Shown here: positions 5,887 to 64,000 of the stretch, one piece after another
Position numbering within the stretch: the first letter of the stretch is position 1
How the letters are laid out: each line of letters opens with the position of its first letter
Assembly (NCBI RefSeq): GCF_000143415.4
Contig: NW_003314360.1
Location: 13,328 to 77,327 of the forward strand
Length of the DNA stretch: 64,000 bases
DNA from: Selaginella moellendorffii
Taxonomy: Eukaryota > Plantae > Lycopodiophyta
Direction: 5' to 3'
Made by a program: the position numbers and the translations under genes
The notes under the pieces: generated by a model
What the model was told of the DNA's origin: nothing
The model's input: the letters and a program-made list of their open reading frames with translations, nothing else
Databases searched by the model: none

Positions 5887-5986
5887 NNNNNNNNNNNNNN
5901 NNNNNNNNNNNNNNNNNNNNNNNNNNNNNNNNNNNNNNNNNNNNNNNNNNNNNNNNNNNNNNNNNNNNNNNNNNNNNNNNNNNNNN
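5887..5986. other. Assembly gap (100 N)
   Basis: Run of N. Confidence 1.
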
Positions 5987-15241: not shown

Positions 15242-15497
15242 TCTTTGAACCTAACAAAGTGTAAGTCTGAAGGTTAGTTGCTAGGCTTTGATGTCTCATA
15301 GGATGGGATCAAGCCCTAGATAACCAAGGCTCAAGAGATTATGGATCAGTGCCCACCAACCAACTTGAAGTAGCTTTGCGAGTTCCTTGGGCAAACAGGT
15401 TTCTTTTGCCATTTCCTCTACAACTATGCTGCATGTTCACAGCCTCTGATAGCTCTACTACAACACAACATTCCATTTTTATGGGGTGAGAGCTAGC

Positions 15498-36900: not shown

Positions 36901-39529
36901 AGTTCATCACCCAACACTGGGTATGGCCTTCTTGGGCCTTCCTGGTCCTTCCTGGGCCAAACTGGCCCTTCCTAGCCAAACTGGCTCCATTGGGCTCCAA
37001 CCCCCACACTCTCCCTACTATACTTTTGGAACCTCTCGCAGCCCCCCCCCCCCCCCTGGGGGACGATCACTTTGGGCTTTCACCCAACTGCCTGTATTAG
37101 TATTCGGACTCGGACTCGGGCTCGAACTCGGACTCGGACTCGGTCTCGGTCTTGGCTTCGGACTCGGTCTCGGTCTCGGTCTCGGGTCCATCTCGGACTC
37201 CATCTCGGACTCCATCTCGGGTCCATCTCGGACTCCATCTCAGGTCCATCTCGGACTCCATCTCGGGTCCATCTCGGACTCCATCTCGGACTCCATCTCG
37301 GGTCCATCTCGGACTCCATCTCAGGTCCATCTCGGACTCCACTTTGGGTCCATCTCGGACTCCATCTCGGACTCCATCTCGGACTCCATATCGGACTCCG
37401 TCTCGGTCCATCTCGGACTCCATCTCGGGTCCATCTCGGACTCCATCTCGGATCCATCTCGGGTCCACCTCGGACAACATCTCAGACTCCATCTCGGGTC
37501 CATCTCGGACTCCATCTCAGACTCCATCTCGGGTCCATCTCGGACTCCATCTCGGACTCCATCTCGGGTCCCTCTCGGACTCCATCTCGGACTCCATCTC
37601 GGGTCCATCTCGGGTCCCATCTCGGGTCCATCTCGGGTCCATCTTAGACTCCATCTCAGACTCCATCTCGGACTCCATCTCAGACTCCATCTCGGACTCC
37701 ATCTCGGGTCCATCTCGGACTCCATCTCGGACTCCATCTCGGGTCCATCTCGGACTCCATCTCGGACTCCATCTCGGACTCCATATCGGACTCCGTCTCG
37801 GTCCATCTCGGACTCCATCTCGGGTCCATCTCGGTCTCCATCTCGGACTCCAACTCGGGTCCATCTTGGACTCCATCTCGAACTCCATCTTGGACTCCAT
37901 CTCGAACTCCATCTTGGACTCCATCTCGGGTCCATCTCGGACTCCATCTCGGGTCCATCTCGGACTCCATCTCGGACTCCATCTCGGGTCCATCTTGGAC
38001 TCCATCTCGGACTCCATCTCGGGTCCATCTCGGGTCCCATCTCGGGTCCATCTCGGGTCCATCTCAGACTCCATCTCAGACTCCATCTCGGACTCCATCT
38101 CAGACTCCATCTCGGACTCCATCTCGGGTCCATCTCAGACTCCATCTCGGACTCCATCTCGGGTCCATCTCGGACTCCATCTCGGACTCCATCTCGGACT
38201 CCATATCGGACTCCGTCTCGGTCCATCTCGGACTCCATCTCAGACTCCACCTCGGACTCGATCTCGGGTCCATCTCGGGTCCACCTCGGACTCCACTTCG
38301 GACTCCAACTCGGACTCCACTTCGGACTCCACCTCGGACTCCATCTCGGGTCCTTCTCGGACACTACCATGTGTCATGTCTTGGTCCTTTTGGGTCCCTT
38401 TTTGGAGCCTTGCTTATTGCTCGTTTCGTGCTCATTCCTCGAGCCGTTCGTTAGGAGTTCCACTCCCGCTCTCGACCTTTCAAGGTGGAGCTTTTGGCCC
38501 AAACGTGTTACACTCGTTTGGCTTTCGCTTCGGCCACTACCACGTGGCACCCTTCCGGCTCCACTTTGGGGCCTAGGGATTTTGTGTCTCACAAACCCTT
38601 TGTTCCTCGAACTCAGTTTTGATTCTATAGAATGTGGTTTGAGGGACTCCATAAATGATTCTCCATGCCTTCATGCAGACCAAACCCCTTTGGAAGACTA
38701 TGCCCCCCACCTGATGTTCTGAAGCATCAACAGATGACTGTAATGCCTCATACACAAAATTGCGAGCTGCCTTCCAGGACAATGTCTTGTATCTTGCTCT
38801 CTCCTCTTCAATAGCATCCCAATCAGCATGTTGACAGCACCTCCTCTTGCAACAAGCAACTGTCGAGACCATTCGAACCTCCATCGCCATTTTCTGCCTT
38901 TTCGGTTCGTTGCTCAGATCCCTTTGGCTGCACTTTAGGAAGGTGTACTTTCTTTTCCCATGAAGAGATGTTCTGTCATCAGTTGTAGTGGTGTTTGATT
39001 GTGAATCCTTCACATTCTTAAACACTAAGTGCCTCAATTTCCACCGCACAATGCTTCCAATAGTCAGACTGTTTTCTTCTGTGTCAACAACCTCTAAAAT
39101 CGCAACTCCAATATCATCCCAGCCCAATTCTTGATTAGCAACCGCATCTCTTGGATCGACAACTGTGGCTAAACCCTCAGCTACCACCTCCCCCTCGGGG
39201 TTGTTTAGAAACACCTTCGTCTGAATCCATGTAGCACGGTTCTTAAGATCCACGGAGGGAACATGCATTGCACTTGCGCTGTCCCCAACATCTGCTTTCT
39301 TCTGAAGATTTTTCAAGGCAACAACAACATTTACCCCGACGACCATCTCTCCTCATTCAATAGCGACCACATTCCCATCGAAGATAGTCTCTACTGATAC
39401 AGCAGCATTGCCTTCCCCAAGCCTTTGACAGTGTATAACAAAGTTCCAATCCATAGACACAAGGGTCCCTTTTGCAACTCTCTTCCCACCATTCAAAATG
39501 TAAACCTTTTCCCCAACCCTGAAGGCCAT
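33920..39529 (-). pseudogene. DUF7869/Sola-like DDD transposase of copy A (~1020 aa when reconstructed)
   Basis: FSKCDEC, LCIIHDKMDQKK, LLLQTDNAGSENKN, FLIVGHTHEDVDAMFS. Disabled by CGA>TGA at 39353, the solo LTR at 36057-38593, a 1-bp deletion near 35776 (relative to copy B) and an in-frame TAG at 34727. Confidence 0.85.
36057..38593 (-). mobile_element. Solo LTR, family X (2537 bp, expanded tandem array)
   Basis: TGTAAG...TCACA with TSD AACCC on both sides. Copy B has the empty site with a single GGGTT near 63223. Confidence 0.95.
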
Positions 39530-40824
39530 TCTGAAAGTGTAGAAAAGAAGTTAACACCATACAAAAAATGATTGGAGAATGGCCTAAATCATAACATACC
39601 AAACAACCTCAATAGCATGAGGCCACATGCCATTATTCAAACATGCTATTAACACCCACGTGAAATTTCGCATTCACAAAATTGGCATGAGGCCTTATGC
39701 CATCTTGATATACACACAGCTGCAGGCAAGTAAAAACATACATGACAATACACTAGCCATGAAATTGCAAGGGCCCAAGATGGCATGTGGCCTCATGCCA
39801 TTTCTAAATGTGGTCCTAAGCCATTCCATGGTGAACATACCAGGAAGCACAAGTGCCGAATATCAAGAGGAAGCGGTAGCCACACCAAAGACAGTGCCGC
39901 TCGCAACACCGCAACTGCTTGTAGCGCCGCTCGCAACACCGCAACTGCTCGTAGCGCCACTCGCACAAATTGCCACTCGCATAAACTGCCGCTCGCAATG
40001 GCGCTCGCAATGCCGCAACCGCTCGTAGATGCATATACCACAGCTCACAACGCCGCTTACACAAGCAGCGCTCACTGCGCTCAGCAGAACCAAGAACACG
40101 GCGCACAAAAATGATAGACCTAGGAATGAGTTCAAGAATTCAAAAATAACACACGCTTGAACGTCATATCAAATCCTCTGACAAACCAGATCTTATGACT
40201 CCTCTGACAAATTTCAAACTGAGTAGCTTCTAGACTTTGGTGTCGGAGGTTGAACTTTGTCACATCATGTCCTTGCCTCGATCCAGCTGTGCCATGTCAA
40301 TGATTCGAACTTTGCCATGCCATGTCAGCGATCCGCGCCAAGATTATTCGCTGTGTAAAGGAATAATTATGCTGTGTGTGTACGTCCATTTATGGCAATA
40401 TAAGGCCACACGCCATTCAAAGAATAATGCTAGTCGAGCATTTTTTGGTGCATTTTTGGGTTCAAAATTGCATGAGCCCACACGCTATAAAGTTTACCTG
40501 TACCAAAAATAGAAACAGCTTTATTTACTTGGGAATTTAAGTGGTTGAGTCATTTTTAAACTTACAAACACATGCCCTACTTACATTCCTTTGGTTGCTT
40601 AAAATTCAAAAATATTATAAACCTTTCTTTTTGCATTTTCAATGTTTTCAATTATGGTTTTTGATTTTCGCAAGACCAGCCTAGTAATCTATTTGCATCC
40701 CGTCATGTTTATAGCTAGCTTTCGTTTGTCCCTTTCGCTAGCCTGAGATACATCTACTCGGCATCTGCCTCTTACAGCATTTGCCCAGAAAGGGCATCTT
40801 TCTTCACGCAGCATTTGCCACATA

Positions 40825-40850
40825 TTTAGGGTTTAGGGTTTAGGGTTTAG
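40825..40850 (+). repeat. Interstitial plant telomeric repeat (TTTAGGG) x3.7 inside transposon copy A
   Basis: Direct reading. Confidence 0.9.
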
Positions 40851-43800
40851 CAATTCAGTAGCTTGATAAACATGCAAATACAGAACTTGATGCAAAATCC
40901 TTTGATATGTCACAATGCCCCTAGGACCATAAACACATTTCAATAGAGAGGGTCCTTTCATTTCATAACTCCTTACGTAGATCTTGGTGAAACCAGAGTT
41001 AGTGAATTATTAAATGATATCCCAATCATGATCTTTCTTTTGGATTTCGCGTGCATGCAGTCCGAGGAATGATGACGTTGCGGATTTCTTTTGGATTTTG
41101 CGTGTTTGCATGCGCACGGCAATCCAGAAATTAATGGTGGCGCCCAAGTCCGAGGAATGATGACGTGGCGGGATTACCAACCGTTGTGACATTTCGCGCG
41201 TGTGAGGTTAGGTTTTGCATTTTGCTTCGTACTCGCGCTCGCGCTCGCATCACACTCGCACTCGTAATCATTACAGGTTACAGGTCCCAGTTACTGGTTA
41301 CTAGTTACTGGCTACTCCAGTGGTTACTCAAGCAGCTAATCCGGTGCTTACTCTATGGGTTGATAGTTATGTGTGCTTGAGGCCTACATCTCCATTTTCA
41401 CCCTTATTCCTTTTCATCACAGGCATTTCGGGCAACTTTGAGCAACTTGAGCACTAGCCTACAGTCTTCTTGCTCCTGTCAACCCAGTTGCCTTGATCGG
41501 GCATTTGTAGTGTTTAGGGTATTTGATGTCGGTCCAAACTAGACGTGCAACAAATTGGCACTCTTTTACCATACCTCCAGGCCCTAAGGTATGGAGTAAA
41601 CTTTCTCACATCCAAATGCAGTTTAGGTACGACACTGCACCTTCTCAGGCCGAGTCCTCTTCATCCTTGATAGAATCTAGTGACTTCGATCTATGAGCTA
41701 TGGTGCAGCCACCTTTAGCTCGACCTCAGCTCCATGTTCTGCAGAAGGGGAGTGATCTGCCAACCTTCTCAGGTGTTGGAATAGTCTCTCCAACATTGCA
41801 TATTAGTCACTTTGATTACTATTGTACCACAAACATGATCGTCAACGATGATTGTATGTGCCGTGACTTCTTGCAGTCTCTTGAAGGCAAAGCAGCAACT
41901 TGGGCAAATTCTCTCCTCCTAGAGGACCAGAAAGACTTCTAGACACTACTTGCTTCTTTCAAACAATGTTTTGTTGAAGAATGTTTCGTTCAGCTACTGG
42001 TTGACCTCTTTTCATTCTGGCAGGGTGCTCACGAGTCTGTTCCTGACTACATCACCCAGTTTTGAGCATACTGGAAGCAATGTTGGGATTTTAGAGTAGT
42101 CCAAGATGAACAATAGGGGATCACGGCATTCACAACGGGTCTGCATGGGAACTTGTAGCAGAAACTTCTCAAAAAGACATTCAAGTCTTGTTGTGAGGTA
42201 TTTTTGTTTGCCACGAAGCTGGAAAGAGAACTTCTTGTCGACTTAGGGATCACTAGAGTTGATTTCAACTAAACCATCACCCCGTCAAAGTCACCTTGTG
42301 CAGCTATTCACCTGTCCACACCAAAGCCCATCGCTATCAAAAACTAAGAACTTCACGAACAAGATGCGGCAATTGAAAGAGATCATTCTTTAGTAGCAAT
42401 CACACCATGACAAACTGCTCCAGTAGCTGGTGGAGTCTAGAAAAGAGGCCGCTACAGCTCGGGAATGTAGATTTAAGTCCCATTGGTGCACTCACTGCAA
42501 GACAAACACACACAACACACAGCACTGCTTCAAGCTTCACCTAGAGCTTCGGCCTCCATCTTCTCAACGTGTCCAACAACATCCCTTCGCTAATAATTCC
42601 ACATCATCTCTGGGTTCAAGGACATATCAGGAGCAGTTGGAGTGAAAAACAATTGAGGCAGCCCCTTCGTCAAGCAAAGGCAAGGCACCAGCCTTATTGG
42701 TCAACACAATTTTGGTAGCCAAGGAACTCTATAGGCAATAGCAGCAAACCGTAGCCATTCGAGCCCAAGTGAAGAAGAAGGTAGCTGCTCAGCTTGCCAT
42801 AGATCCCTTGGCGTCGGTTGAGAGTGAATCTTTGTGGGCACCAGATCTAGTGACACAAAGGGTGGTTTGTAAGCTCCCCTTCAAGTCACTACTCTCTTCT
42901 CCTCCTGAGATCTCACCAACATCTATTCCTATTCTAGAGCCAGTTCTTCAATAGCTAGTTGACACTCCTATCACCTTTTCGCTACAAGATATGTTGTGTC
43001 TTGTCCCGGGATTCGGCCAGCGTTTAGAGGAGTTTGCACGGTCAGGAACACTAGAGAGCACTCTCAAGAGGACTCTTCAAGAGGTGCACATTGTCGACAT
43101 GACAAGATATGGTGGAGATCCTGGTCCATTCTTTTTCCTGGTGCAGATTGGTAGTTCCTCTTGTAGGATGGATGCTTTGGTTGACTCTGGTTCTGGAAGC
43201 AACATTATCTCTCTCAAAGTTACCCTTTCAATACAGCTACAGATTATTGAGAGCTCCCCCATCGTGCTCAAGACCATCACCGACCACACTGTTCCTCTAG
43301 CGGGCATTTGCTGTGGTGTCAAGGTCTTTGTGCAAGGTGTTATTTTTGAGGTGGATTTCCTCATGGTTGACTACCAACATCTTGGAATGTCCTCTTTGAA
43401 GGACTCTATCATCCTTGGCTGCTCATGGCAAGTCACAGCCCATTGCACCATTGACAGTGCACAAGGCAAGATGGAAATTAGTGATGGAACCCATAGCGCC
43501 ACCTTTCTCAACAACCACAACAGAGCTCTTTCTTAGCAAGCCCATCAAGCTCAGACTAAGATGGCCTTCACACCACACTTCCCTCTTGAGCTCATAGAGG
43601 TTTTTCCTGAGTTGGCGGTGGAGTCAACTATCTATATGATGGATGCTTCTCATGCAATGCAATTGACATGGTTGAAGTTGAGTCAGATAGCTCGAGACAT
43701 CTCTCAGCTTCACTCTCTTTATTTGAGAGTAAGGCCGAGCCCTCTTTATTTGATGGTGGGGCTTATAGGGTATGGGCTCCCATATCCAGCTTTTCGGAGT

Positions 43801-44944: not shown

Positions 44945-46559
44945 TGTAAGCGACTAATTTTTCCATTTTACTTTAGTCACTTAACCGCACCTTTGACCAC
45001 TTGGAGGAGTCTCATTCACAACCTCCATAAGTCCCAGTTAGGACTTGGGGCTTGCTAGCCCCGAGAATGGCATCCATACCACTCCACCTTTGCACTTGGT
45101 CCAAGTGCTCCACGTGTCCGATCCCATGACCGGCACTCCAAGGTACCACCAACATACCAGCCCGTTACGCTAGGCCATGCCCTTTCACCTTAGTCACATC
45201 GGTGGTCCAACACCACCTACATTGTTCTCCAAAACTGGGCCATCTATCCATGAGTGGTCATCCCAGATCCACTCCTTAGCATCCTTAGGATGCCCGCAGA
45301 CATGGGGAATAGCCTTCCCTAATATCCCCTTTCAGTCCTCACAAAGTCCCTTTCTGTCTATGGCCGTGTTCGCCAACACTGCCACTAGATCAAGGCCCGC
45401 AAGCCCAACCTCTAAGTCCCTCTATCCTTTGGGACTTCCTCACCATGTGACCGTATCCTTGGTCACTGCACTAGAGGACTGCTCCTCTTCCCTTTCACCG
45501 TTTGGGACTTTGGGACAACATTTCGGAACATCGTGGCCTTACGCAAGCCTCATGGGTACTCCCCCCACCTCTCGCCTTTTGGTGCTCTAGGCATGGGCTT
45601 AGAGCGAGGTTCCATTGAGCCACACCAGGTATCCAAATAGGTAGTACCACCCACGCTTGGACTGGGAGCATCGGCCAGTTGATCTCCCGAGGGAACTAGA
45701 GCTGGCTCTTGAACACTTCACCAAGCTACCCCATTTGTCGGCCTGTGTTCACTCTAGTCATGGACTTCCCAGTGGGCAGCTCATCACCCAACACTGGGTA
45801 CAACCTTCCTGGGCCAAAGTGGCCTTTCCTGGCCAAACTGGCTCCACTGCAGTCCTCCCCCTACTATACTTTTGGAGCTCACCAAACCCCCCAGGGTCTG
45901 GGAGACGAACGCTTTGGGCTTTCACCCTCTCAGACTCGAACTCGGACTCGGACTCGGGCTTGGGCTCGGTCTCGGCCTCGGCCTTGGTCTCGGTCTTGGT
46001 CCCGGTCTCAGACTCCATCTTGGGTCCATCTCGGACTCCATGTCGGACTCCATCTCGGGTCCATCTCGGGTCCACCTCAGACTCCATCTCGGACTCCATC
46101 TCGGGTCCATCTCGGAATCCATCTCGGGTCCGTCTCGGACTCAATCTCGGATCCATCTCGGACTCCATCTCGGGTCCACCTCGGACTCCACCTCGGACTC
46201 CATCTCGGGGTCCTTCTCGGACTCCACTTCGGACTCCATCTCGGGGTCCTTCTCAGACTCCACTTCGGACTCCAACTCAGGTCCATCTCAGACTCCACTT
46301 CGGACTCCAACTCGGGTCCATCTCGGACACTTCCATGTGTCATATGTTGGTCTTTTTGGGTCCCTTTTTGGAGCCTCGCTTATTGCTCGCTTCGTGCTCG
46401 TTCCTCGAGCACTTTGTTGGGAGTTCCACTCCCGCTCTCGACCTTTTAAGTTGGGGCTTTTAGTCCAAACGTGTTATGCTCGTTTGGTTTTCGCTTTGGC
46501 CACCACCACATGGCACCCTTCCGGCTCCACTTTGGGGCCTAGAGATTTTGTGTCTCACA
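44945..46559 (-). mobile_element. Solo LTR, family X
   Basis: TG...CA ends, TSD TTAAG; empty paralogous site at ~31294. Confidence 0.95.
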
Positions 46560-47588: not shown

Positions 47589-49265
47589 TGTGGGGTATAA
47601 AATCCCTAGGCCCCAAAGTAGAGCCAGAAGAGTGATATGTAGTAGTGGCTGAAACGAAAACCAAATGAGCGTAACACGTTTAGACTAAAAGCTCCAACTT
47701 GAAAGGTCGAAAGCGGGAGTGGAACTCCCAACGAAGTGCTCGAGGAACAAGCATGAAGTGAGAGATAAGTGAGTCTCTAGAAAAGGGACACAAGAGGACC
47801 GACACATGACAAGTGGAAGTGTCTGAGATGGACCCGAGATGGAGTCCGAGATGGACCCAAGATGGAGTCTGAGATGGACCGAGACAGAGTCTAAGATGGA
47901 GTCCGAGATGGAGTCCGAGATGGACCCGAGATGGAGTCCAAGATGGAGTTCGAGATGGAGTCCAAGATGGAGTTCGAGATGGAGTCCAAGATGGACCCGA
48001 GTTGGAGTCCGAGATGGAGTCCGAGATGGACCGAGATAGAGTCCGAGATGGACCCGAGATGGAATCCGAGATGGAGTCCAAGAAGGACCCGAGATGGAGT
48101 CTGAGGTCGAGACCGAGACTAGGACCAAGACCGAGACCGAGACCGAGACCGAGACCAAGACCAAGACCGGGACCGAGACCGAGACCGAGACTGAGGCCGA
48201 GGCTGAGACCGAGCCCGAGCCGGAGCCAGAGCCCCAGCCGGAGTCCGAGTCCGAGTCTGAGTCCGAGTCTAAGTCCGAGTCCGAGTCCGAGTCCGAGTTC
48301 GAGTCTGAGAGGGTGAAAGCCCAAAGCGTTCGTCTCCCAGACCCTGGGGGTTTGGTGAGCTCCAAAAGTATAATGAGGGGGAGGACTGCAGAAAGGCTGT
48401 ACCCAGCGTTGGGTGATGAGTTGCCCACTGGGAAGTCCAAGACTAGAGTGATCACAAACCGACAAGCGGGGTAGCTTGGTGAAGTGTTCAAGAGCTGGCT
48501 CTAGTTCCCCCGGGAGATCGACTAGCTGATGCTCCCAGTCCAAGTGTGGGTGGCACTACCTACTTGGATACCTGGTGTGGCTCAACGGAACCTCGCTCTA
48601 AGCCCATAGCTAGAGCATCCAAAGGCAGTAGGCGAGGAGAGTACCCACGAGGCCCGCATAGGGCCACGGTGTTCCGAAATGTTGCCCCAAAGTCCCAGAC
48701 TGTGGAAAGGAAGAGGAGTAGCCCTCTGGCGTGGTGACAAAGGAGACAGTCACATAGTGAGGAAGTCCCAGAGGACAGTTGGACTTAGTGGTTGGGCCAA
48801 TGGGCCTTGATCAAGTGATAGTGTTGGCGAACACGGCCATGGACAGGAAGGGACCTGGTGGGGACCAAAAAGGAGACATGGGGGAAGGCTATTCCCCATG
48901 TCTGCAGGCATCCTGAGGATGCTATGGAGTGGATTTGGGATAGCCACTCATGGATGGATGGCCTAGTCTTTGAGAGACGGGATTGTAATGCAGATGATGT
49001 TCGACCACCGATGTGACCAAGGTGAATGGGCATGGCCTAGCATGACAGGCGGGTATGTCTGTGGTACCTTGGGGTGTTGGTCTTGGGATCGGACACGTTT
49101 TGCACTTGGACCAAGTGCAAAAGCTGAGTGGCGTGGATGCCATTCTCGGGGCTAGCAAGCCCCAAGCTCTGAATGGGACTTATGGAGGTTGTGAATGAGG
49201 CTCTTCCAAGTGGTCAGAAGTGTGGTTAAGTGACTAAAGTAGAATGGAAAAATTAGTCGCTTACA
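47589..49265 (+). mobile_element. Solo LTR, family X (opposite orientation)
   Basis: TG...CA ends, TSD ATAGG (47584-47588, 49266-49270). Confidence 0.95.
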
Positions 49266-52205: not shown

Positions 52206-53719
52206 TGTTATGATACGGCGCAAAAAGAAAGAGAACTAGTCGCCCTAGACTATGCTACGCCACCTCTTGAGGTTCCTCACCACCCAACCACCCCCAAGCT
52301 ACCTCAAAAGCTCCACTGCGCCGTCGCTCCACTGTGAGCCCTAGGGTAGGTTAAGTCCCTTACCCTAACATGGCTTAATATACCCTTGAGCCTCCCTTTG
52401 ACTAATGCTGACCACGTAGTCAAAGCTGGCGCCTAACAATTCTTCCCCCCTAACAAAGTCCTTGTCCCAAGGACGAGTTGTACCGGTGATCACCCTTTCT
52501 GGGGAAACCCTGCTCAAGCTCCTAGTCCATTGTCCACAGCCGTATACATCAAGGAGGCATTGGGCCCGTCACTCCGAGATAGTACACCTTTCAACTGGCT
52601 AACATAAAATACCGGATGAATTTTCACCCCAGCTGGCAGCCGCACCCTATAAGCCACTTTACCAATGCGCTCCAGCACTTCATATGGACCAGCATATCGA
52701 TAGGAGATTTTATCACTCTTCCCTGTCCATAAAGGCACCAAGGTGTTCCGCCGCTCACTTGACAGAAAGATCACGCACACAAAGACGAGATCACCCACCT
52801 TATATTCCCGGAATTGGCGATGCTTATTGGCAAACTTCTCCGCTCTATCCTGAGCTGCTTGCAAATTCCATTTGCACACCACCAAGATCTCATCAAGTTC
52901 TGTAGCCAGATAAGTTGCCTCGGAATCAAGCTTATCTTGAACGTCCTTACTCAAATGCAATGCCAACTCCATTGCTGTTCGAGGATGCCTTCCAAACATG
53001 GCAAAGTAAGGACTTAGCTTGGTTCCACTGTGTTGGCTATTTTTGTAAGCAAATTGCACCAACAGAAGATATAAATCCCACTGTCCTTGCCTTTGACCAA
53101 TGCTACAACGTAGCATATCCTCCACCATCTGATTCACACACTCGGTTTGCCCATCCATCTGAGGATGATCTCCACTCGAGAGTTTCAAAGTCACTTGCAT
53201 AGCCTTTGCAAAGCTTTTCCAAAATTCACTAGTGAACTTTGAATCTTGATCACTAATGATGTCCTCCGGCAAACCAAAATCAGGAAAAACCTTCTCCAAG
53301 TAAACCGCAGCCAAGTCTGAGGCAGTGACAGTCTTCCGAAGAGCCAACAACCGCACATACTTCATCAACCGATCCACTATGACCCATACCTGCTCCTTTT
53401 GCCTCTGTGTTCGTGGCAAACAAGTGATGAAGTCCATAGAGATACTACACCAATGGCTCTGAGGAATACGTAAAGGTTGCAAAATTCCCCTCGGCTTCTC
53501 CCGTGGCACCTTAACCCGCCGACAAAGCTCACATGATTTACAATACTTGAGGATATCAGCCTTCATATTCCTCCAATAAAAGTTGCGCTTAATCAACTCA
53601 TACGTCTTCTTCCCCCCAAAATGACCGGCCTCTGGACGATCATGATAGTGGAATAAAACTTGAGTAATTAACGCATCCACCCATGGCAAATATACACGGC
53701 CATTGTATACACAATGGAA
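52206..53719 (-). mobile_element. Family-Y Gypsy 3' part: integrase, PPT and 3' LTR (52206-52438)
   Basis: YHDRPEAGHFG, SMDFITCLP, ISDQDSKF, HPQMDGQTE, GPY module; PPT GGGGGAAGAAT next to the LTR. Confidence 0.9.
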
Positions 53720-53891
53720 GGTGTAGCTACCTCTACTCAGCATTTTGATGCTTATGTCTAGGGGCTGGAAGTGTTGTTGGCAAAACCACACTTGTGGAGA
53801 CTTTTTATCTCGCGGATATCCATCGTGTGGATTTCATTCTTGGGATGCTATGGTTAGTGAAGGTGGATCCAGAGATAAAGTGGAGTATTAA
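53720..53891 (+). mobile_element. Family-Y Gypsy protease fragment in opposite orientation
   Basis: Matches 3150-3250 plus 3465-3520 on the same strand. Confidence 0.8.
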
Positions 53892-54323
53892 GAAGCTCTA
53901 TTTCGTTAAAGTGGGAATTGTCATTATCCCACTTGTAAAATAAGGTTTCCAAACCTTTATATAGTATATAAATATAACAAAATTCAACTGCATTGAGGCA
54001 CATGCCATTTTATTTTAAACAAGGAAATGTCTACTCAATCACTTCTCACTGCTTCACCTCTCTCTTCTCCTTGTCATCGTCGTCCAATTTCTTTCCATCC
54101 TTTTAATATTGGCTCAGTTGCTCCGAGTCTAGGTGGAGCCCAAGTCCCCATTCAATCTTTACTTTCCCCTTATTAATAAAACAACTTCGTAGACTTCCAA
54201 TAACATGCTGTAACACTTCTAGTATAATGCAAATCCTCTCAAAGAATTGTCTTTTAATATTAATACAATGGCATGGAACCCCATGCCATAATAAGTTACA
54301 TTTTTAAATAAATACATGCCATC

Positions 54324-57300
54324 TCAGACTGTTATTTTTTGCCTCCAACGCCTATACAATAATCTTGGAATTTCATCACTCTCCACACTATCAGGATTTA
54401 AACCCAATAGTAATGCCATCTCTTCTCTAATACGTCCACGCTCATGTTCAGTGGTCGAAGAACCCATCCGGTTGAGCAGATTATGGAGATGCGGATAGTG
54501 CTTGGCTAGACAATATACATGCCATAAATGATGACTGGTGTCTGTCCGATCAAATGGCTTCTGATATACCGTTCCATCTGCCATTTGGTTGATTTCTGCA
54601 GCCACCTCCTGGACTGGCCGGTTCTCTATCACCATCGCTTCAAGCCGTTTTGCAAGGTCCCCCAGAACATACGGTTTCTTCTCCCTAGTTTCCATACTGC
54701 AAGAGATGGGGTGCACTGCATATGTGTGCGTGTTCGCTGCAGTTTTAATCGGCGAGTCATCGATGATGAGGATTTCACTTGACCTAGCAGTCCGGTTCAT
54801 CACTACAGCCTCTGCCTTGACGAAGATGGGCTTGCTACCCCTCACATGGACCATAGTCAAGCAATCCTCCTGCGTTAGGAGAAAGTCAAATGGTAATATT
54901 ACTCGCGTCTGATCGTGCATCATCTGTAGCAACGTTAATGCATTGTGGCGCATCATGGATGTCCAAACTCCCAATTGCAAATTGAACCCGGCCCTCTGTT
55001 TTAAGTGTCGCATGGTCATTATTAGATCCCGCAGTTTCTCCCGTGTGATTAATGTGAATCTGTCTCTTTTGACCAACTTGCGACCGCAGGCTTTGGAGGG
55101 TGCAGTGACATTCGAGGACGAGCCACGCTCATGGGAGAAAAGGACACCGTTCAGATCAAAAACGATACAGTACTTTCGCCGTGACTCTGAAATGAAATGC
55201 GTTAGCATAAAAAATGGTACAAGTCAATTTTACCATCTACAATATTAGCGAATGGTGCTCCCAATGGTCGTTCAGAGGGTTTTGGTCGAGGAAACGTGAA
55301 GGGCGGAAATACTCTCCTCTGCAATGTGGGGTCAATCGCATCCGATGGCGTGTGGGCACATGCCATTTCAGCTGTAGACTCTGGTACAACTGGCTCAACA
55401 GTGGCATGGGGTGGTTCCGATGGCGTGTGATCACACGCCATTTCAGCTGGTGCCTCCGTTGGCAAAGTGGACATGACCGAACAGGCAGCAGGGGCGGTGT
55501 AGGGAGGTTCCAACGGCGCGTAGTCAGACGATTGGGCACACGTTGGAAATGAGGATACGACCGGCTCGGCGGCTGGGGCGGCCTCATGCGGGTCCAATGG
55601 CGCCTGGTCACCGTCAGTTGGATACGTGGACAAGATTGACTCAGTGGTATGGGCAGCATCAAGTGGAGCGTGGTCAGCTTGCTTGGCGTTGATATGGATA
55701 GTAGCCTCCACCAGCTCTGATGACTCTTGCAGGCAAGTAGAGTCCACTGGCGGATCCATATGCATGTCCAAATATCTCCCTTCGATTGAGATGGTATCCT
55801 CCCGTGCTACTAAAAACAAACTCATTAGCACATTGAATCGACTATACTGTATTTACCATCAACTGCTATTGAGGAACTAGGACCGATATCACTTGGGCGC
55901 ACTGCTGATTCTGAAGGATTGGACATACGTTTCGACCCTTGCTTGGCACTATCCTTCCTCGACACTAAAGGCTAGAGTTTGTATCTTAATTCAACTGAAT
56001 AATCTCTACTTACCATTTCTTCTGCGACCTACATGGACAATGTTAGAAATGGTAAAAGGTTAGGAATGGATGTACTATTATTTACCTGATGGTTTGTCTT
56101 GTATGACCTTCCTCCGCTGCTCTTTGGCCACCTCAGGCTGGCCATCATCGTCATCATCGTCATCGTCGTTATTGTGATCGTCACCATTGTGAGGACCATC
56201 CAAGTCCTCTTCGTCCTCCTCTTCTTCGTCCTCCTCTTCTTCGTCCTCCTCTTCGTCCTTCTGCTCTTCCTGCTCATTATCTTTCTCTGGCTCCTCATCC
56301 CCCTCTTGCATTTCTTCCATAGGCTGCTCAGGTTGGATTGCTTGTTTTTCCAGGACCATCTTGGAAAAATCATCTGGCCGAGTCTCCATCTCAAAATACA
56401 AGACATCCATAGCCTGTTTTAGTGCGTGACCTAGGACCGTATCCTCACCCGACTGTCTTAACATGGTTTCTGCACGTTCTTGCACCCTTCGAAGACGACG
56501 AGATGAGAAAAACGTGGCCCTAACTTGAAAAGCATCCCTCATCCATTGTACCTCTCCATTGAGATTGGGGAAGGGGAGTCCGCCATAGGAATCTGAGTCA
56601 GAAGGTGGTGACTGGCTCCTTTCACTCAGCCCTTGATCTGCAATGAATGGCATGAGCACACACGCCATAACCGCGAGGCATTACCTATCATCTTTTCGTT
56701 GCCCTTCTTCCTTTTCGAATCAAACGCCTCTGATCCCGACGACTGTCCAACGTGCTTTCGCTTTTTATGACCACTGTCAGTTTGAGCTTGGCTGGTGCTT
56801 GCCTGTTTTGCCTTTGAAGAAGTGTCTCCTGCAAGGAATGGCATGAGACCACACGCCATTGCAAATATAATTTGTACCTCCTTTTTTCCTATTGCTTGTC
56901 TGTTTGTCCTTCTTCGACGCGCCACCAGTGCGCTTTTCAGTCCTCGTGTCTGAATATTCACAACGATCTATAATCAAAATGGCGTGAGGCCTCACGTGAC
57001 CTTACCTTGTGCAGGTTGAGACTTCGGCCTAACATCAGTAGCTGTTAACGCCGTTTCAGCATCTGGGGGTGGCCACGCTACTGCATACAGAGCTTGTGAG
57101 ATAACATTTAAACTTAAAGTGCGTACTCACCAGGTTCGTAGAGAAGATACTGTTTTTCTTTGGCAACTGTAATTATATGCTCCATTGAAGTCACCTCTTC
57201 AATGGAGTTTGTCACCGCAACACACGGAACACCCTTGAGTAGTGCGGCTCGAAAGAATAGTCCGCCGCAGTTGTACTCGACAACGCATTTGCCCTTGGAG

Positions 57301-58609
57301 TCACCCGCTATTGCGTTGAAGACCCAGCTGAGCATTTCCCATGCTGCACCTGGAGCTTTCTTTGGATTCGAAAGCTCCATAGCCGTCTTCAGTTCCTCAG
57401 GCACGGGTAAATTGACCTCCCTCAGATCAATTCGATCGGCTTTGTTGAACGAAGCTGGGAAGTCACTCCAGTCCCACTCTGCTGCAGGACCAATAACAAG
57501 GGCGACTGTGAAGATGCGGACATTCGTCGGTATCTTCTTCTTAGCCATTATCCCATGGATCTCCCGCATCTCCTTGCCTTTCAACCGAGCCTTCACCTCG
57601 TTCAAGGCCTTCCAGAACTTGTGATAGGATTCGGAGTCGTAGATCATATAGTGGACTGAAGATTCCACCTCCGCAAGTCCCACCATTAAGTCAATGATGG
57701 AGCTGACTTCGTCTGCATGAGTGATCTCCTCGTTTGTGAAGTCCATCACACAAAAGATGTTCTTGACCTGCTCATCTCCGCGGGAAACGATGCTCCTCCA
57801 CCTTTGATCCTCATCCGAATTCACGTATACCCGGTAAGGTTCTCGATAGGCCTCTGCTGCGGGGTCGAGCTGTTTCTGAAGCCGGCGGTCGACATCCCTC
57901 TTAATGAAATTTGGATACTGATCCAACTTCTCAGCTTTACTTTTCGTGGCATCCCGCAGCAGATCGATGAACTTGGTGGCCCCCTTCACGTACTCGTCGA
58001 TGTCTTCATTTGACAAGTCCAGCTCTTCCATCATCTCTTGCGTGGTGTCGATGCTCACCCTCGCCACGGCCACTTGCTCGAAGATCCAATCCTTCAATAG
58101 CGCACGAGCTCTCAGAGTCGTGCACAAGTCCTCGTATGTCACAATATGGCCGGGAGTCATTTTGGTCTTGTTGAAGACTACCTCACCAAGTAGAAGAGCA
58201 TTAGCCACTGTCAGAAGGTCGTCGTCGTCTAGAGACCGCGAGAAACGCAAGGCGTTGAGCTTCAAATCATTGGGCTTCCGGCCGTCCTCCACACCCATTG
58301 AGTTTAGCAACTCCCCGTCATGGTACCTCCTTAGCACATCTACCCATTTGTCAAAAACAACTTTTGTCGCGAGTAGAATGTTATGGATGCTGAGTGTGTC
58401 ATTGACCCCCAGTGTTTTCGAGAGAAGACTCGAGAATTCCTGCAATGGAAATGGCGTGAGGCCACATGCTATGCCACATGCAACGAGGCTTACCTGCCAG
58501 GCGCTAGTTGCTAGTGCACGTCCTTGTCCTGGTTTTTGTGGCTTCTTCAGTTGAACCCAGAGCTTCCGTGTTCGTGCCAATGTCTCGTGCAGACCCGATT
58601 TGTAGCACG
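54324..58609 (-). CDS. Transposon cargo gene, >1280 aa: helical region, amino-MTase-like domain, acidic/Pro-rich linker, FCP1/NIF-type HAD phosphatase-like domain (5' end in the gap)
   Basis: Open spliced model with GT-AG introns: exons 58609-58494, 58439-57131, 57080-57006, 56967-56878, 56828-56685, 56637-56086, 56028-56014, 55964-55857, 55809-55234, 55186-54324. The last eight introns are all phase 1. HAD motifs IVFDLNGVL, GVWTSM, K and LIIDDSPIK. MTase-like segment CVVEYNCGGLFFRAALLKGVPCVAV is weak. Confidence 0.75.
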
Positions 58610-59461
58610 NNNNNNNNNNNNNNNNNNNNNNNNNNNNNNNNNNNNNNNNNNNNNNNNNNNNNNNNNNNNNNNNNNNNNNNNNNNNNNNNNNNNNNNNNNN
58701 NNNNNNNNNNNNNNNNNNNNNNNNNNNNNNNNNNNNNNNNNNNNNNNNNNNNNNNNNNNNNNNNNNNNNNNNNNNNNNNNNNNNNNNNNNNNNNNNNNNN
58801 NNNNNNNNNNNNNNNNNNNNNNNNNNNNNNNNNNNNNNNNNNNNNNNNNNNNNNNNNNNNNNNNNNNNNNNNNNNNNNNNNNNNNNNNNNNNNNNNNNNN
58901 NNNNNNNNNNNNNNNNNNNNNNNNNNNNNNNNNNNNNNNNNNNNNNNNNNNNNNNNNNNNNNNNNNNNNNNNNNNNNNNNNNNNNNNNNNNNNNNNNNNN
59001 NNNNNNNNNNNNNNNNNNNNNNNNNNNNNNNNNNNNNNNNNNNNNNNNNNNNNNNNNNNNNNNNNNNNNNNNNNNNNNNNNNNNNNNNNNNNNNNNNNNN
59101 NNNNNNNNNNNNNNNNNNNNNNNNNNNNNNNNNNNNNNNNNNNNNNNNNNNNNNNNNNNNNNNNNNNNNNNNNNNNNNNNNNNNNNNNNNNNNNNNNNNN
59201 NNNNNNNNNNNNNNNNNNNNNNNNNNNNNNNNNNNNNNNNNNNNNNNNNNNNNNNNNNNNNNNNNNNNNNNNNNNNNNNNNNNNNNNNNNNNNNNNNNNN
59301 NNNNNNNNNNNNNNNNNNNNNNNNNNNNNNNNNNNNNNNNNNNNNNNNNNNNNNNNNNNNNNNNNNNNNNNNNNNNNNNNNNNNNNNNNNNNNNNNNNNN
59401 NNNNNNNNNNNNNNNNNNNNNNNNNNNNNNNNNNNNNNNNNNNNNNNNNNNNNNNNNNNNN
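58610..59461. other. Assembly gap (852 N) covering the 5' part of the cargo gene
   Basis: Run of N. Confidence 1.
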
Positions 59462-61027
59462 CCCGGACTCGCTGGCGAATGTGCACTGTGTGTGCACCGG
59501 ATCGTAGCAGCAAGGCTACTCTGCCACTTACAGTTGGAGAGTGGTGCTGAAATCTCCCGGGACGCCAAGTGGGCTGCGTGTGGCTGGTGGAGTGGGCGGC
59601 GGAGTTGGCGGCGAAGTTACAAACTGGGTGTGTCTTGAAGTGGATGCCGATGCACACGAGCGCGATGCGAGCGCGAGTGTGATGCAAGCGCGAGTGGACG
59701 CCGATGCACACGAGAAACCTGTAGAGAAGTGAGCGTGATCGCGAGTGGGAGCGCGATGCGAGCGGGAGCGCGAGTGTGATGCGAGCGCGAGCGCGAGTGT
59801 GCGAGCGCGAGTACAAAGCAAAATGCAAAACCTAACCTCACACGCGCGAAATGTCACAACGGTTGGTAATCCCGCCACGTCATCATTCCTCGGACTTGGG
59901 CGCCACCATTAATTTCTGGATTGCCGCGCGCATGCAAGCACGCAAAATCCAAAAGAAATCCGCAACGTCATCATTCCTCGGACTGCATGCACGCGAAATC
60001 CAAAAGAAAGATCATGATTGGGATATCATTTAATACCCTCGCTATATTTATACCATGCATGATTGGATATTCCAAAGCATCTTGTATTTCCAAAAATGGC
60101 AGATGTTCAGCTAAATAAAGAAATTCTATCTGTTTCTATTTTTCTCTCAAATCAATATTATAGCGTGTGGGCTCATGCAATTTTGAACCAAAGAAACCCA
60201 AAAAACGTTGGACCCAAAATATTTTGAAAAAACCCAAAAAACCCTAAACATTTTAAACCCAAAAATCCAGGCGTCCTGTGGCGTTATTCCTTGAATGGCA
60301 TGTGGGCGCATGCCATTTTCAGGGCCAAATGCTGAATGGAGAAAAATTCCCTTTCAGTGCAAATGCTGCAAGAGGCAGATGCCGAGTACAAAGGACTGTA
60401 ACTACCTCACATGACACAGATAAACTTTTCTCTATTTGGCAAAGATAAACTTTATAGCGTGTGGGCTCATGCAATTTTGAACCCAAAAAATGCACCAAAA
60501 AATTCTCGGCGTCATCTGGCATTATCTCTTGAATGGCGTGGGGCCGCATGCCATTTTCAGGGGCACATAGGAGTATATTCCTAGGATATTCTGACACGCG
60601 CGAGATTTTTTTGAGTTTTCTGGAGATCCAACCGTTAGATCGCAACTAGATTTTACAGAATGGTATACAATGTCTTTCTTGATGACCCTGCAAAGAAGCA
60701 TCTCAATCGGACACCACATGAGACCACACGAGCCTTACAATGTTTCAGGGGCATTTGCCATAGATCCGACCGTTATTTTGCTCCAAGATTTCACAGTTTG
60801 GTGTGCATTGACCTTTCCATCGAAATTGCAAAGGGACATCACAATCAGATGCGGGATCACAAGAAACTAACTTCACTAACTCTGGTTTCACCAAGATCTA
60901 CGTAAGGAGTTATGAAATGAAAGGACCCTCTCTATTGAAATGTGTTTATGGTCCTAGGGGCATTGTGACATATCAAAGGATTTTGCATCAAGTTCTGTAT
61001 TTGCATGTTTATCAAGCTACTGAATTG

Positions 61028-61060
61028 CTAAACCCTAAACCCTAAACCCTAAACCCTAAA
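61028..61060 (-). repeat. Interstitial telomeric repeat (CCCTAAA) x4.7 inside transposon copy B
   Basis: Direct reading; one unit longer than in copy A. Confidence 0.9.
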
Positions 61061-62082
61061 CATGTGGTAAATGCTGCGTGAAGAAAGATGCCCTTTCTGG
61101 GCAAATGCTGTAAGAGGCAGATGCCGAGCAGATGTATCTCAGGCTAGCGAAGGGGACGAACGAAAGCTAGCTATAAACATGACGGGATGCAAATAGATTA
61201 CTAGGCTGGTCCTACGAAAATCAAAAACCATAATTGAAAACATTGAAAATGCAAAAAGAAAGGTTTATAATATTTTTGAATTTTAGGCAACCAAAGGAAT
61301 GTAAGTAGGGCATGTGTTTGTAAGTTTACAAATGCCTCAACCACTTAAATTCCCAAGTAAATAAAGTTGTTTCTATTTTTGGTACAGTAAACTTTATAGC
61401 GTGTGGGCTCAAGCAATTTTGAACCCAAAAATGCACCAAAAAATGCTCGACTAACATTATTCTTTGAATGGCGTGTGGCCTTATATTGCCATAAATGGAC
61501 GTACACACACAGCATAATTATTCCTTTATACGGCGAATAATCTTGGCGCGGATCGCTGACATGGCATGGCAAAGTTCGAATCACTAACATGGCACAGCTG
61601 GATCGAGGCAAGGACATGATGTGACAAAGTTCAACCTCCGACAGCAAAGTCTAGAAGCTACTCAGTTTGAAATTTGTCAGAGGAATCATAATATCTGGTT
61701 TGTCAGAGGATTTGATGTGACGTTCAAGCGTGTGTTATTTTTGAATTCTCGAACTCATTCCTAGGTCTATCATTTTTGTGCGCCGTGTTCTTGGTTCCGC
61801 TGAGCGCAGTGAGCGCTGCTTGTGTAAGCGGCGTTGTGGGCTGTGGTTTATGCGTCTACGAGCGGTTGCGGCATTGCGAGCGCCATTGCGAGCGGCAGTT
61901 TATGCGAGTGGCAGTTTGTGCGAGCGGCGCTACGAGCAGTTGCGGTGTTGCGAGCGGCGCTACGAGTAGTTGCGGTATTGCGAGCGGCACTGTCTTTGGT
62001 GTGGCTACCGCTTCCTCTTGATATTCGGCACTTGTGCTTCCTGGTATGTTCACCATGGAATGGCTTAGGACCACATTTAGAA

Positions 62083-62104
62083 ATGGCATGAGGCCTCATG
62101 CCAT
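62083..62104. repeat. Perfect copy of the 22-bp dispersed palindrome ATGGCATGAGGCCTCATGCCAT
   Basis: Representative of ~30 degenerate copies confined to the two DNA transposon copies. Confidence 0.95.
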
Positions 62105-62292
62105 TAGTGGTACCACTAATGGCATGAGGGCTCATGCCAATTTTGTGAATGCGAAATTTCACGTGGGTGTCAATAGCATGTTTGAATAATGGCATGTGGC
62201 CTCATGCTATTGAGGTTGTTTGGTATGTTATGATTTAGGCCATTCTCCAATCATTTTTTGTATGGTCTTAACTTCTTTTCTGCACTTTCAGA

Positions 62293-64000
62293 ATGGCCTT
62301 CAGGGTTGGGGAAAAGGTTTACATTTTGAATGGTGGGAAGAGAGTTGCAAAAGGGACCCTTGTGTCTATGGATCGGAACTTTGTTATACACTGTGAAAGG
62401 CTTGGGGAAGGCAATGCTGCTGTATCAGTAGAGACTGTCTTCGATGGGAATGTGGTCGCTATTGAACGAGGAGAGATGGTCGTCGGGGTAAATGTTGTTG
62501 TTGCCTTGAAAAATCTTCAGAAGAAAGCAGATGTTGGGGACAGCGCAAGTGCGACGCATGTTCCCTCCGTGGATCTTAAGAACCGTGCTACATGGATTCA
62601 GGCAAAAGTGTTTCTAAACAACCCCGAGGGGGAGGTGGTAGCTGAGGGCTTAGCCACAGTTGTCGATCCAAGAGATGCGGTTGCTAATCAAGAATTGGGC
62701 TGGGATGATATTGGAGTTGCGATTTTAGAGGTTGTTGACACAGAAGAAAACAGTCTGACTATTGGAAGCATTGTGCGGTGGAAATTGAGGCACTTAGTGT
62801 TTGAGAATGTGAAGGATTCACAATCAAACACCACTACAACTGATGACAGAACATCTCTTCATGGGAAAAGAAAGTACACCTTCCTAAAGCGCAGCCAAAG
62901 GGATCTGAGCAACGAACCGAAAAGGCAGAAAATGGCGATGGAGGTTCGAATGGTCTCGACAGTTGCTTGTTGCAAGAGGAGGTGCTGTCAACATGCTGAT
63001 TGGGATGCTATTGAAGAGGAGAGAGCAAGATACAAGACATTGTCCTGGAAGGCAGCTCGCAATTTTGTGTATGAGGCATTACGGTCATCTGTTGATGCTT
63101 CAGAACATCAGGTGGGGGGCATGGTCTTCCAGAGGGGTTTGGTCTGCATGAAGGCATGGAGAATCATTTATGGAGTCCCTCGAAGCACATTCTACAGAAT
63201 CAAAACTGAGTTCGAGGAACAAAGGGTTCAACAGGCAGTCCATGGGAACGACGGTACGCACAAAACCAGGGGTCATGTTGTATATGGAGAGGCAATCTTC
63301 AAGAGGTTTGTCGAGACATGTAGCGAGCAGCAACCACATAAAACCCGCCTCTTGGAAGATGGAACACGAGACACCCAACGAGTTCTCCCTTCCATGTATA
63401 CCAAGGGGGCCATATTGGAAGATGTGAATCGGGAACTCCAGAGTAATGGCTACAGGAAGCTGAGCCAATCTAGATTTAGTAGATTGTGGAGCAACAGGTT
63501 CAGGGATGTGAGTATAGGAAAGTACTCCAGCTTTTCAAAGTGTGACGAGTGCACTGCTATCAAAATGGCTTTGTCGAAGAATTCTTGCAGCGCTCAAGAG
63601 CGAGAGACGTTGGTTAGAAGGCGGCTCGACCACAACATCGAGCAGAGAAGCTGCAGGACTGCATATTATCATAACAGGATTCTCTCCATGGAGAGACCTG
63701 ACTCTTACCTCTGCATCATCCACGACAAAATGGACCAGAAAAAGACGTGCTTACCTCGACTCAATCCTGCCCCCAAGGCAATCTCTTCATCCATGCAGCT
63801 GCCTGTGTCTCTGTTTGGCATAATCGCTCATGGGCATGGTGCCCAGAACTATGGGAACTTCTTTGTACCTCTATGGGGTGGCGGGGGTGCAAACATGATG
63901 ATTGCGTCCCTAGCAAAACACTTAAGGTCTCTGCAAAGTGCGCAGACTGAGCTGAACGGCCAACCCTTGCATAAGGCCCTTGTCGATCGAACCCCATACA
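62293..64000 (+). CDS. DUF7869/Sola-like DDD transposase of copy B, open to the window edge (absent from the ORF track because it has no stop)
   Basis: MAFRVGEKVYILNGGKRVAKGTLV... reads through CCKRRCC, LWSNRFRDVSIGKYSSFSKCDEC and LCIIHDKMDQKK without the lesions seen in copy A. Confidence 0.88.
   Translation, partial: MAFRVGEKVYILNGGKRVAKGTLVSMDRNFVIHCERLGEGNAAVSVETVFDGNVVAIERGEMVVGVNVVVALKNLQKKADVGDSASATHVPSVDLKNRATWIQAKVFLNNPEGEVVAEGLATVVDPRDAVANQELGWDDIGVAILEVVDTEENSLTIGSIVRWKLRHLVFENVKDSQSNTTTTDDRTSLHGKRKYTFLKRSQRDLSNEPKRQKMAMEVRMVSTVACCKRRCCQHADWDAIEEERARYKTLSWKAARNFVYEALRSSVDASEHQVGGMVFQRGLVCMKAWRIIYGVPRSTFYRIKTEFEEQRVQQAVHGNDGTHKTRGHVVYGEAIFKRFVETCSEQQPHKTRLLEDGTRDTQRVLPSMYTKGAILEDVNRELQSNGYRKLSQSRFSRLWSNRFRDVSIGKYSSFSKCDECTAIKMALSKNSCSAQERETLVRRRLDHNIEQRSCRTAYYHNRILSMERPDSYLCIIHDKMDQKKTCLPRLNPAPKAISSSMQLPVSLFGIIAHGHGAQNYGNFFVPLWGGGGANMMIASLAKHLRSLQSAQTELNGQPLHKALVDRTPY

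Follow-up and report, generated by a model that had tools for sequence, protein, structure and literature searches.

Known Sola elements and the Selaginella element

In plants, Sola elements are rare and have been little characterised. They have been annotated in fern genomes, and a survey of 1007 plant genomes found recently active clusters to be rare, with nine clusters for Ginger and Sola together. That survey capped the element length at 12 kb and would therefore miss an element of 13 kb. In bivalves, Sola1 elements, with a mean length of 5.4 kb, rank among the longest DNA transposons (PMC10294476). The Sola2-Fanzor1 chimeras of dictyostelids are at least 7 kb long and contain a second, unrelated protein gene between short terminal inverted repeats (TIRs) (Bao & Jurka 2013, PMC3627910). 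The stretch of DNA analysed here, called the window in the following, comprises 64,000 nucleotides from the lycophyte Selaginella moellendorffii (contig NW_003314360.1) and contains two partial copies, copy A and copy B, of a DNA transposon of about 13.1 kb. This element is a new, large, and young member of the Sola1 group, while the Sola group itself was already known. A previous reading made from the letters of the window without database searches (the sequence-only reading) had not recognised it as belonging to a described plant family. Given the Sola annotations in ferns, the rare active Sola clusters in plants, and the published two-gene Sola2-Fanzor elements, novelty as a family is not supported.

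With the Sola1 group the element shares a homologous transposase core with conserved DDD residues, TIRs, a large size, and a patchy but wide host range that includes plants. It differs from the described members in its length, which is over twice the mean of the bivalve elements, in additional open reading frames (ORFs) on the opposite strand, and in more than 20 dispersed 22-bp palindromes. The Sola2-Fanzor1 elements belong to the same superfamily and also have a second unrelated gene between the TIRs. However, they represent another Sola group, and their passenger is a TnpB-like Fanzor protein and neither an NIF-like nor an orphan ORF. CACTA/En-Spm and other two-gene plant TIR transposons also contain more than one gene between their TIRs and repeated internal motifs to which the transposase binds, and Pack-MULEs capture fragments of host genes. 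The likeness of the window element to these is one of organisation only. The transposase family is unrelated. To our knowledge, there is no transposition assay for any Sola transposase. The main points of interest are a possibly active Sola1 element of a plant, the link between DUF7869 and Sola1, and the hint that two genes and many palindromes could be characteristic of the family as a whole.

Two inverted copies and the termini of the element

The 24-mer AAGCTCTATTTCGTTAAAGTGGGA is present at exactly two sites of the window, 32291 and 53893, both on the forward strand (exact search), and no such match is expected by chance (100 shuffles). In the self-comparison, region 59766-64000 of copy B pairs in reverse with region 41263-35281 of copy A in four blocks of 96.8-99.5% identity, with position 64000 of copy B corresponding to position 35281 of copy A. 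Because the interiors of the copies are inverted to each other whereas the 24-mer is in direct orientation, it marks opposite ends of the element and is thus its TIR. The left TIR of copy B (53893-53916, forward strand) is directly preceded by Ty3/Gypsy sequence, which has a paralogue at 3137-3520 and whose homology (to 3465-3520 of the paralogue) stops at 53891, one to two bp ahead of the 24-mer. An integrase ORF with Integrase_H2C2, rve, and SH3_Tf2-1 domains (52514-53791, minus strand) adjoins copy B, which was therefore inserted into a Gypsy pol gene. The right TIR is found in copy A (32291-32314, on the forward strand as copy A is inverted), and the same terminus is present in a third copy on the public Logan contig L001 (run ERR10900155). 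This copy is 97-99% identical and ends in the reverse complement of the 24-mer (2193-2216 of the contig), after which unrelated reverse transcriptase sequence of a LINE (long interspersed nuclear element) begins. A fourth copy is represented by the public protein P0154, which has 764 residues and is 98% identical to copy B.

The complete element is bounded by 24-bp TIRs. Only these 24 bp are common to both ends and the sequences diverge directly inside. The flanks of the termini are ..TAAG in copy B, ATCT.. in copy A, and AAAG.. in the L001 copy, with one end seen per copy. The sequence-only reading had already proposed that the 24-mer opens both oppositely oriented copies as a TIR, that position 64000 of copy B equals position 35281 of copy A, and that the element can be assembled from the two partial copies, all of which is borne out by the two exact sites, the inverted blocks, and the terminus in L001. 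Its layout also agrees with the present data: a TIR, cargo pointing to the left, a spacer of about 2.8 kb with telomeric repeats, a transposase pointing to the right, and the second TIR. About 3 kb of copy B lie beyond the end of the window, and its right end, TCCCACTTTAACGAAATAGAGCTT, would be expected about 3.0 kb past position 64000 (near 66,990). Exact look-ups of the window ORFs in public assemblies, done to read past this position, returned no record, and scanning metagenomes for the TIR gave no match.

The transposase belongs to the Sola1 group

In copy B the transposase ORF starts with an ATG at 62293 on the forward strand and is open to the end of the window (62293-64000), which corresponds to the first 569 codons. 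This part is 98% identical to P0154, and its N-terminal part is kept in relatives. The degenerate transposase gene of copy A (33920-39469, minus strand) would have about 1020 codons if complete and supplies the DUF7869 core (34727-35794) and a C-terminal part that is also kept in relatives (33920-34714). The full transposase of about 1020 residues is thus a combination of the N-terminal reading of copy B with the core and C-terminal part of copy A. The core matches the Pfam family DUF7869 (PF25273) with an E-value of 3.6e-39 and 134.8 bits at a gathering cut-off of 26, and contains the motifs CDEC, DKMDQ, QTDNAGSENKN, and GHTHEDVD, so that the C..C, D.MDQ, QxDN..ENKN, and GHTHEDxD motifs named in the sequence-only reading are all present. 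Matches to Transposase_21 or MULE families were not found for the window transposase. An exhaustive search of cluster representatives at 50% identity resulted in 4323 relatives at E<=1e-3, including proteins of the liverwort Riccia sorocarpa, a nemertean, and a sea urchin. The nearest relatives have kept all three parts, N-terminal, core, and C-terminal, in one continuous ORF.

The alignment of the window protein with 37 relatives contains the invariant residues C19, C22, H49, R57, D80, D247, N255, L265, G282, H283, H285, and D289. An AlphaFold model based on these 38 sequences reached a mean pLDDT (predicted local distance difference test score) of 81.6 and a pTM (predicted template modelling score) of 0.76. 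The modelled order of secondary structure elements, b1(D80)-b2-b3-a1-b4(D247)-a2-b5-a3(D289), is an RNase-H-like arrangement in which D80 is located on b1, D247 at the end of b4, and D289 on the next helix. Residues 195-230, a loop that is found as an insertion only in the closest clade, are disordered in the model. According to the alignment and the model, the transposase is composed of an N-terminal Cys-rich region, a DUF7869 core with a predicted RNase-H-like fold and the putative catalytic triad D80/D247/D289, and a conserved C-terminal domain. The assignment to a Sola-like DDD transposase with DUF7869, as given in the sequence-only reading, is supported by the Pfam match and the invariant DDD residues and can be sharpened to the Sola1 group.

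This sharpening is based on published reference sequences. Sola1 represents the RNase H-like clade E.10 (Majorek et al. 2014, PMC3985635), and the supplement of that study prints the cores of Sola1-1_AP, of another Sola1 protein (XP_003249065), of Sola2-1_HM, and of Sola3-1_HM. DUF7869 is the only family matched by the cores of Sola1-1_AP and XP_003249065 (E-values of 0.0056 and 0.00068), and both match the same region of the profile as the window protein. No DUF7869 match was obtained with the fragments of Sola2 and Sola3. Against a profile of the 38-sequence family the Sola1 cores scored 24.3 and 29.8 bits. None of 200 shuffles exceeded 2.9 bits, and the fragments of Sola2 and Sola3 reached 3.3 and 2.1 bits, respectively. 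Because the Sola1 cores, unlike the fragments of Sola2 and Sola3, match DUF7869 and the family profile, the window transposase is a Sola1-group enzyme. A comparison with Sola1, Sola2, Sola3, and DUF7869 had been proposed with the sequence-only reading, and of the published core fragments it is those of Sola1 alone that match. The link could be useful for annotation, as thousands of "uncharacterised" eukaryotic proteins carry DUF7869.

Bao et al. reportedly described in 2009 a target-site duplication (TSD) of 4 bp across the whole Sola superfamily. A TSD of this length has been reported for Sola2 (PMC3627910). An automated search for TIRs together with TSDs in 85 related loci identified one clean candidate, L067, which encodes a distant relative of the transposase. 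It has perfect 22-bp TIRs and AAAA on both sides, which would be compatible with a 4-bp TSD but is low-complexity sequence and therefore weak.

State and age of the copies

The transposase frame of copy B is open over all 569 visible codons without any lesion, as had been noted before, and this holds as far as the window reaches. Copy B may therefore be autonomous. Copy A is dead. Its transposase gene contains stop codons at codon 59 (CGA>TGA) and codon 362 (CAA>TAA), a third stop codon at 34727-34729, where P0154 and the relatives have a Gln, and a frameshift through a 1-bp deletion at the position of 63503 in copy B. In addition, the gene is interrupted by a solo long terminal repeat (LTR) of 2.5 kb (36053-38593) with TG...CA ends and the 5-bp TSD AACCC, which is foreign to the element. 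Finally, copy A is truncated at about 41264 inside a GC-rich repeat, where unrelated retroelement sequence takes over. A continuation of copy A past this retroelement was considered and rejected, as region 53917-59765 of copy B is matched nowhere else in the window.

The two copies differ by 1.82% over 3351 aligned bases, with 50 transitions and 11 transversions. With a divergence below 2% and one apparently intact transposase, the element may offer a working Sola1 system. In such a system, the palindromes could be tested as binding sites and the additional ORFs for their relevance. Relative to copy B, copy A shows 38 C>T or G>A differences compared to 12 in the reverse direction (35281-41242 of copy A against 59801-64000 of copy B, without polarisation by an outgroup), and 19 of the 61 differences are in a CpG context. 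This bias would fit the deamination of a methylated, silenced copy A.

The L001 copy (196-2088 of the contig) has two internal deletions, one of 243 bp (62302-62543 of copy B) and one of 2.4 kb (34856-32424 of copy A), and has kept its right terminus. It is an internally deleted derivative which may still be mobilised in trans. The 243 bp are a deletion and not an intron: the boundaries are AG..GC and cannot be shifted by sliding.

Taken together, we consider it likely that the copies belong to a young family of cut-and-paste DNA transposons of the Sola1 group within the Sola superfamily. Multimers of the transposase would bind the TIRs and probably the palindromes, and the element would be excised and reinserted by RNase-H-fold chemistry, leaving a short TSD for which 4 bp would be expected in a Sola element. 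Copy B would have been placed in this way into the Gypsy pol gene, carrying in its left 5 kb at least two real ORFs of opposite orientation to the transposase, one for an orphan protein of at least 497 residues and one for a degenerate NIF/FCP-like phosphatase.

Spacer, assembly gap, and palindromes

The window contains two runs of N, at 5887-5986 and 58610-59461. The second one is an assembly gap of 852 N inside copy B, whose length is an estimate, and it is spanned by neither copy A nor L001. The match of copy A ends at position 59766 of copy B, within a (GAGCGC)n-like repeat and at a distance of 305 bp from the right edge of the gap, and the match of L001 begins only at 62098. The figure of about 13.1 kb for the element includes this estimated gap and a stretch of about 830 bp (60036-60867) that is absent from copy A. 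An apparent ORF of 904 residues across the gap is an artefact, as the 852 N translate into 284 X codons. To the right of the gap follows the spacer of 2831 bp (59462-62292) with the GC-rich (GAGCGC)n repeat at 59664-59811, the telomeric repeats (CCCTAAA)x4 at 61033-61060, eight of the 22-bp palindromes, and the stretch specific to copy B. In copy A, whose truncated spacer covers 39470-41263, this stretch is missing at the junction 41008/41009. Parts of it resemble 40404-40817 of copy A, which suggests an internal duplication of the spacer including its palindromes.

The palindrome has the consensus ATGGCRTG-N6-CAYGCCAT, is specific to the element, and is found in more than 20 copies in the non-coding DNA to either side of the transposase gene. 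If up to one mismatch is allowed in each arm, the window contains 19 sites, seven of them in copy A and twelve in copy B. A profile search at E<0.01 resulted in 27 sites (12 in copy A and 15 in copy B) and in none within the remaining 45 kb or so. Since 17 of these sites had served to build the profile, only about ten additional sites count as independent evidence. In copy B, seven palindromes belong to the cargo side, left of the gap, and the other eight are located beyond its right edge. Because the palindrome is confined to the copies and present on both sides of the gap, it ties the cargo indirectly to the transposase. Judging from copy B alone, we infer that cargo and transposase are one unit across the gap. 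Being two-fold symmetric and restricted to the element, the palindromes are obvious candidates for further sites at which a dimeric DNA-binding domain of the transposase may bind. Two degenerate palindromes are located inside the transposase ORF of copy A at 35167-35243, which corresponds to the loop at residues 195-230. The palindrome does not contain a stop codon in any frame of either strand and is thus tolerable within coding sequence.

The cargo side of copy B

On the minus strand of the cargo side (53917-58609) there are stop-free stretches of 497, 299, 216, and 200 codons. By comparison, the longest stretch in 1000 first-order Markov simulations of this region had a median of 142 codons, a 95th percentile of 197, and a maximum of 272. 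The stretches of 497 and 299 codons exceed this maximum and are therefore real coding sequence, or have been so until very recently. The longest one (57114-58609) is a large ORF of at least 497 codons, identified by its stop-free length, which runs into the assembly gap and does not belong to a recognisable family. No relative was found for it among 5.8 billion proteins (those of 0.55-1.75 times its length), in the PDB, in Pfam, or in NCBIfam, and an AlphaFold model from the single sequence was unusable (pLDDT 33.7). The second one contains an ORF of 294 residues (54324-55208) which matches the Pfam family NIF (PF03031) over residues 13-161 (E-value 4.8e-6, 26.8 bits at a cut-off of 21.8) and thus encodes an NIF/FCP-like phosphatase domain of the HAD type. 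Its sequence reads FDLNGV where the family has DxDxT, so that, as placed by eye, the first Asp is kept and the second Asp and the Thr are replaced. The single detectable relative of this ORF is P0153 (E-value 7e-5), the product of a cellular gene on a gene-dense contig without a transposase.

Two further ORFs are located between these, a proline-rich one (55202-55831) and one with an acidic tract (56078-56668). Both contain palindromes of the element, and their lengths of 200-216 codons only reach about the 95th percentile of the chance distribution. They could represent exons or coding sequence that has decayed. Searches of the PDB sequences and NCBIfam with the cargo ORFs revealed nothing. 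The sequence-only reading had termed the cargo chromatin-type. This is unsupported, because the matches of the acidic ORF to BUD22 and DUF4820 are weak, below the cut-off, and of low complexity, and because the only family match on the cargo side is the degenerate NIF/FCP-like phosphatase, with the 497-codon ORF being without relatives.

Alternative explanations

Several observations weigh against the favoured reading as a young Sola1-group transposon family. None of the copies has both ends, and neither a TSD nor the right end of copy B is seen within the window. The gap at 58610-59461 is not bridged by any copy, the cargo side is known from copy B as its one witness, and a homologue of the cargo was not found in the 85 related loci, most of whose contigs are short. 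The Sola1 reference fragments have only about 125 residues, and their Pfam scores are under the 26-bit gathering cut-off. Concerning the fold, Foldseek did not retrieve a match from the PDB at E<0.001 (best E-value 0.039). The list of weak matches is rich in RNase-H-fold enzymes such as RuvC, PIWI, integrases, Mos1, Sleeping Beauty, and RAG1, and a solved structure of a Sola transposase is not among the PDB matches.

The strongest alternative concerns the role of the cargo. Its ORFs could be passengers without a function in transposition, captured as fragments of host genes by transduplication as in Pack-MULEs and now decaying. We do not favour this explanation, although it is quite conceivable. 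The NIF-like domain lacks the second Asp and the Thr of the DxDxT motif (DLNGV), its only relative is a cellular gene without a transposase nearby, palindromes of the element are found within two of the cargo ORFs, the middle ORFs are within chance length, and a homologue of the cargo was not found beside the 85 related transposases. However, the stretches of 497 and 299 codons were longer than those of all 1000 simulations and should thus be intact or have been intact very recently. In addition, other family members carry large divergent companion genes, so that a second gene may be a habit of the family.

It is also possible that the scaffold was joined wrongly or incompletely at the gap. 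In this case, 53893-58609 would form the left end of another element, possibly a non-autonomous one, that is related and has the same TIR and palindromes, 59462-64000 would come from another copy, and there would be no single two-gene unit of 13 kb. The unbridged gap, the single witness for the cargo side, and the draft state of an assembly with estimated gaps all speak for such a misjoin. We nevertheless regard it as unlikely, since the orientation of the TIR, the orientation of the transposase, and the palindromes on both sides of the gap are as predicted for a contiguous element. Even if the sequences were misjoined, the cargo ORFs would still be located directly inside the left TIR of this Sola1-type family. 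That the 24-mer is repeated by chance or belongs to some other repeat, such as the edge of an LTR, is suggested by the short common sequence of 24 bp and the immediate divergence inside it, but is extremely improbable given that no chance matches are expected and that it coincides with the break in the Gypsy homology and, in the independent contig L001, with the junction between the element and the LINE.

Companion genes and palindromes at related loci

The metagenome scan resulted in 80 loci with related transposases. In several of the longer contigs there is a large ORF beside the DUF7869/Sola1-type transposase, which is divergently oriented in L029, L035, and L085, and on the same strand in L036. 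The companion of L035 (1095-4922, minus strand) has 1276 residues and contains an N6_N4 DNA methylase domain (E-value 1.7e-18), that of L036 (2465-5743, plus strand) has 1093 residues with a methylase and a SET domain, and that of L029 and L028 (711-4208 of L029, minus strand) has 1166 residues with an OTU domain. The companion of L085 (1744-3981, minus strand) comprises 746 residues and does not belong to any family. All four resemble the window cargo in being large ORFs that adjoin a DUF7869 transposase. The methylase, SET, or OTU domain companions of L035, L036, and L029 form a group of related proteins, whereas the window cargo does not have significant similarity to them: for the 497-residue ORF the best BLASTP E-value was 6.3, hhalign gave a probability of 0.1%, and tblastn revealed nothing. 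By eye, there is a co-linear but non-significant resemblance near a motif-I-like stretch.

At least ten of the related loci, including the Riccia locus, have short palindromes of their own that recur around the gene for the transposase. Palindromes of 18-42 bp were noted in L003 (13400-14700, 16388, 17297), L016, L049/L050, L064, L081, and L085. In L085 one and the same palindrome is found on either side of the companion ORF and flanks both genes. In Riccia sorocarpa two DUF7869 genes are separated by a region with more than ten copies of the palindrome CTGGCGGAAAAGTAAGGACATGTGTCCTTACTTTTCCGCCAG. It therefore seems that a large second gene and scattered palindromes recur within the family. As a tentative and on the whole rather doubtful generalisation, many lineages of DUF7869/Sola1 transposons could be two-gene elements, often with a divergent companion gene and with lineage-specific arrays of palindromes serving as binding sites of the transposase, and the window element would be a recently active example from a plant. 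The companions would then be of the methylase, SET, or OTU type in microbial eukaryotes, and an orphan together with a dead phosphatase in the window element.

Other repeats in the window

The remaining non-coding part of copy A, 3' of its transposase gene (32315-33919, minus strand), contains five palindromes and an unsupported ORF of 119 residues. Past the truncation point of copy A, gag-like and aspartic-protease ORFs are found at 41700-43536 on the forward strand. The direct repeats of 1.8 kb at 15495-17267 and 21392-23187 are 97.6% identical with TG...CA ends and look like the LTR pair of one retrotransposon. The solo LTR inside copy A is the same LTR as this pair. Related LTR copies with long internal tandem arrays of units of about 12 bp are located at 36053-38593, 44945-46559, and, in inverted orientation, 47599-49265.

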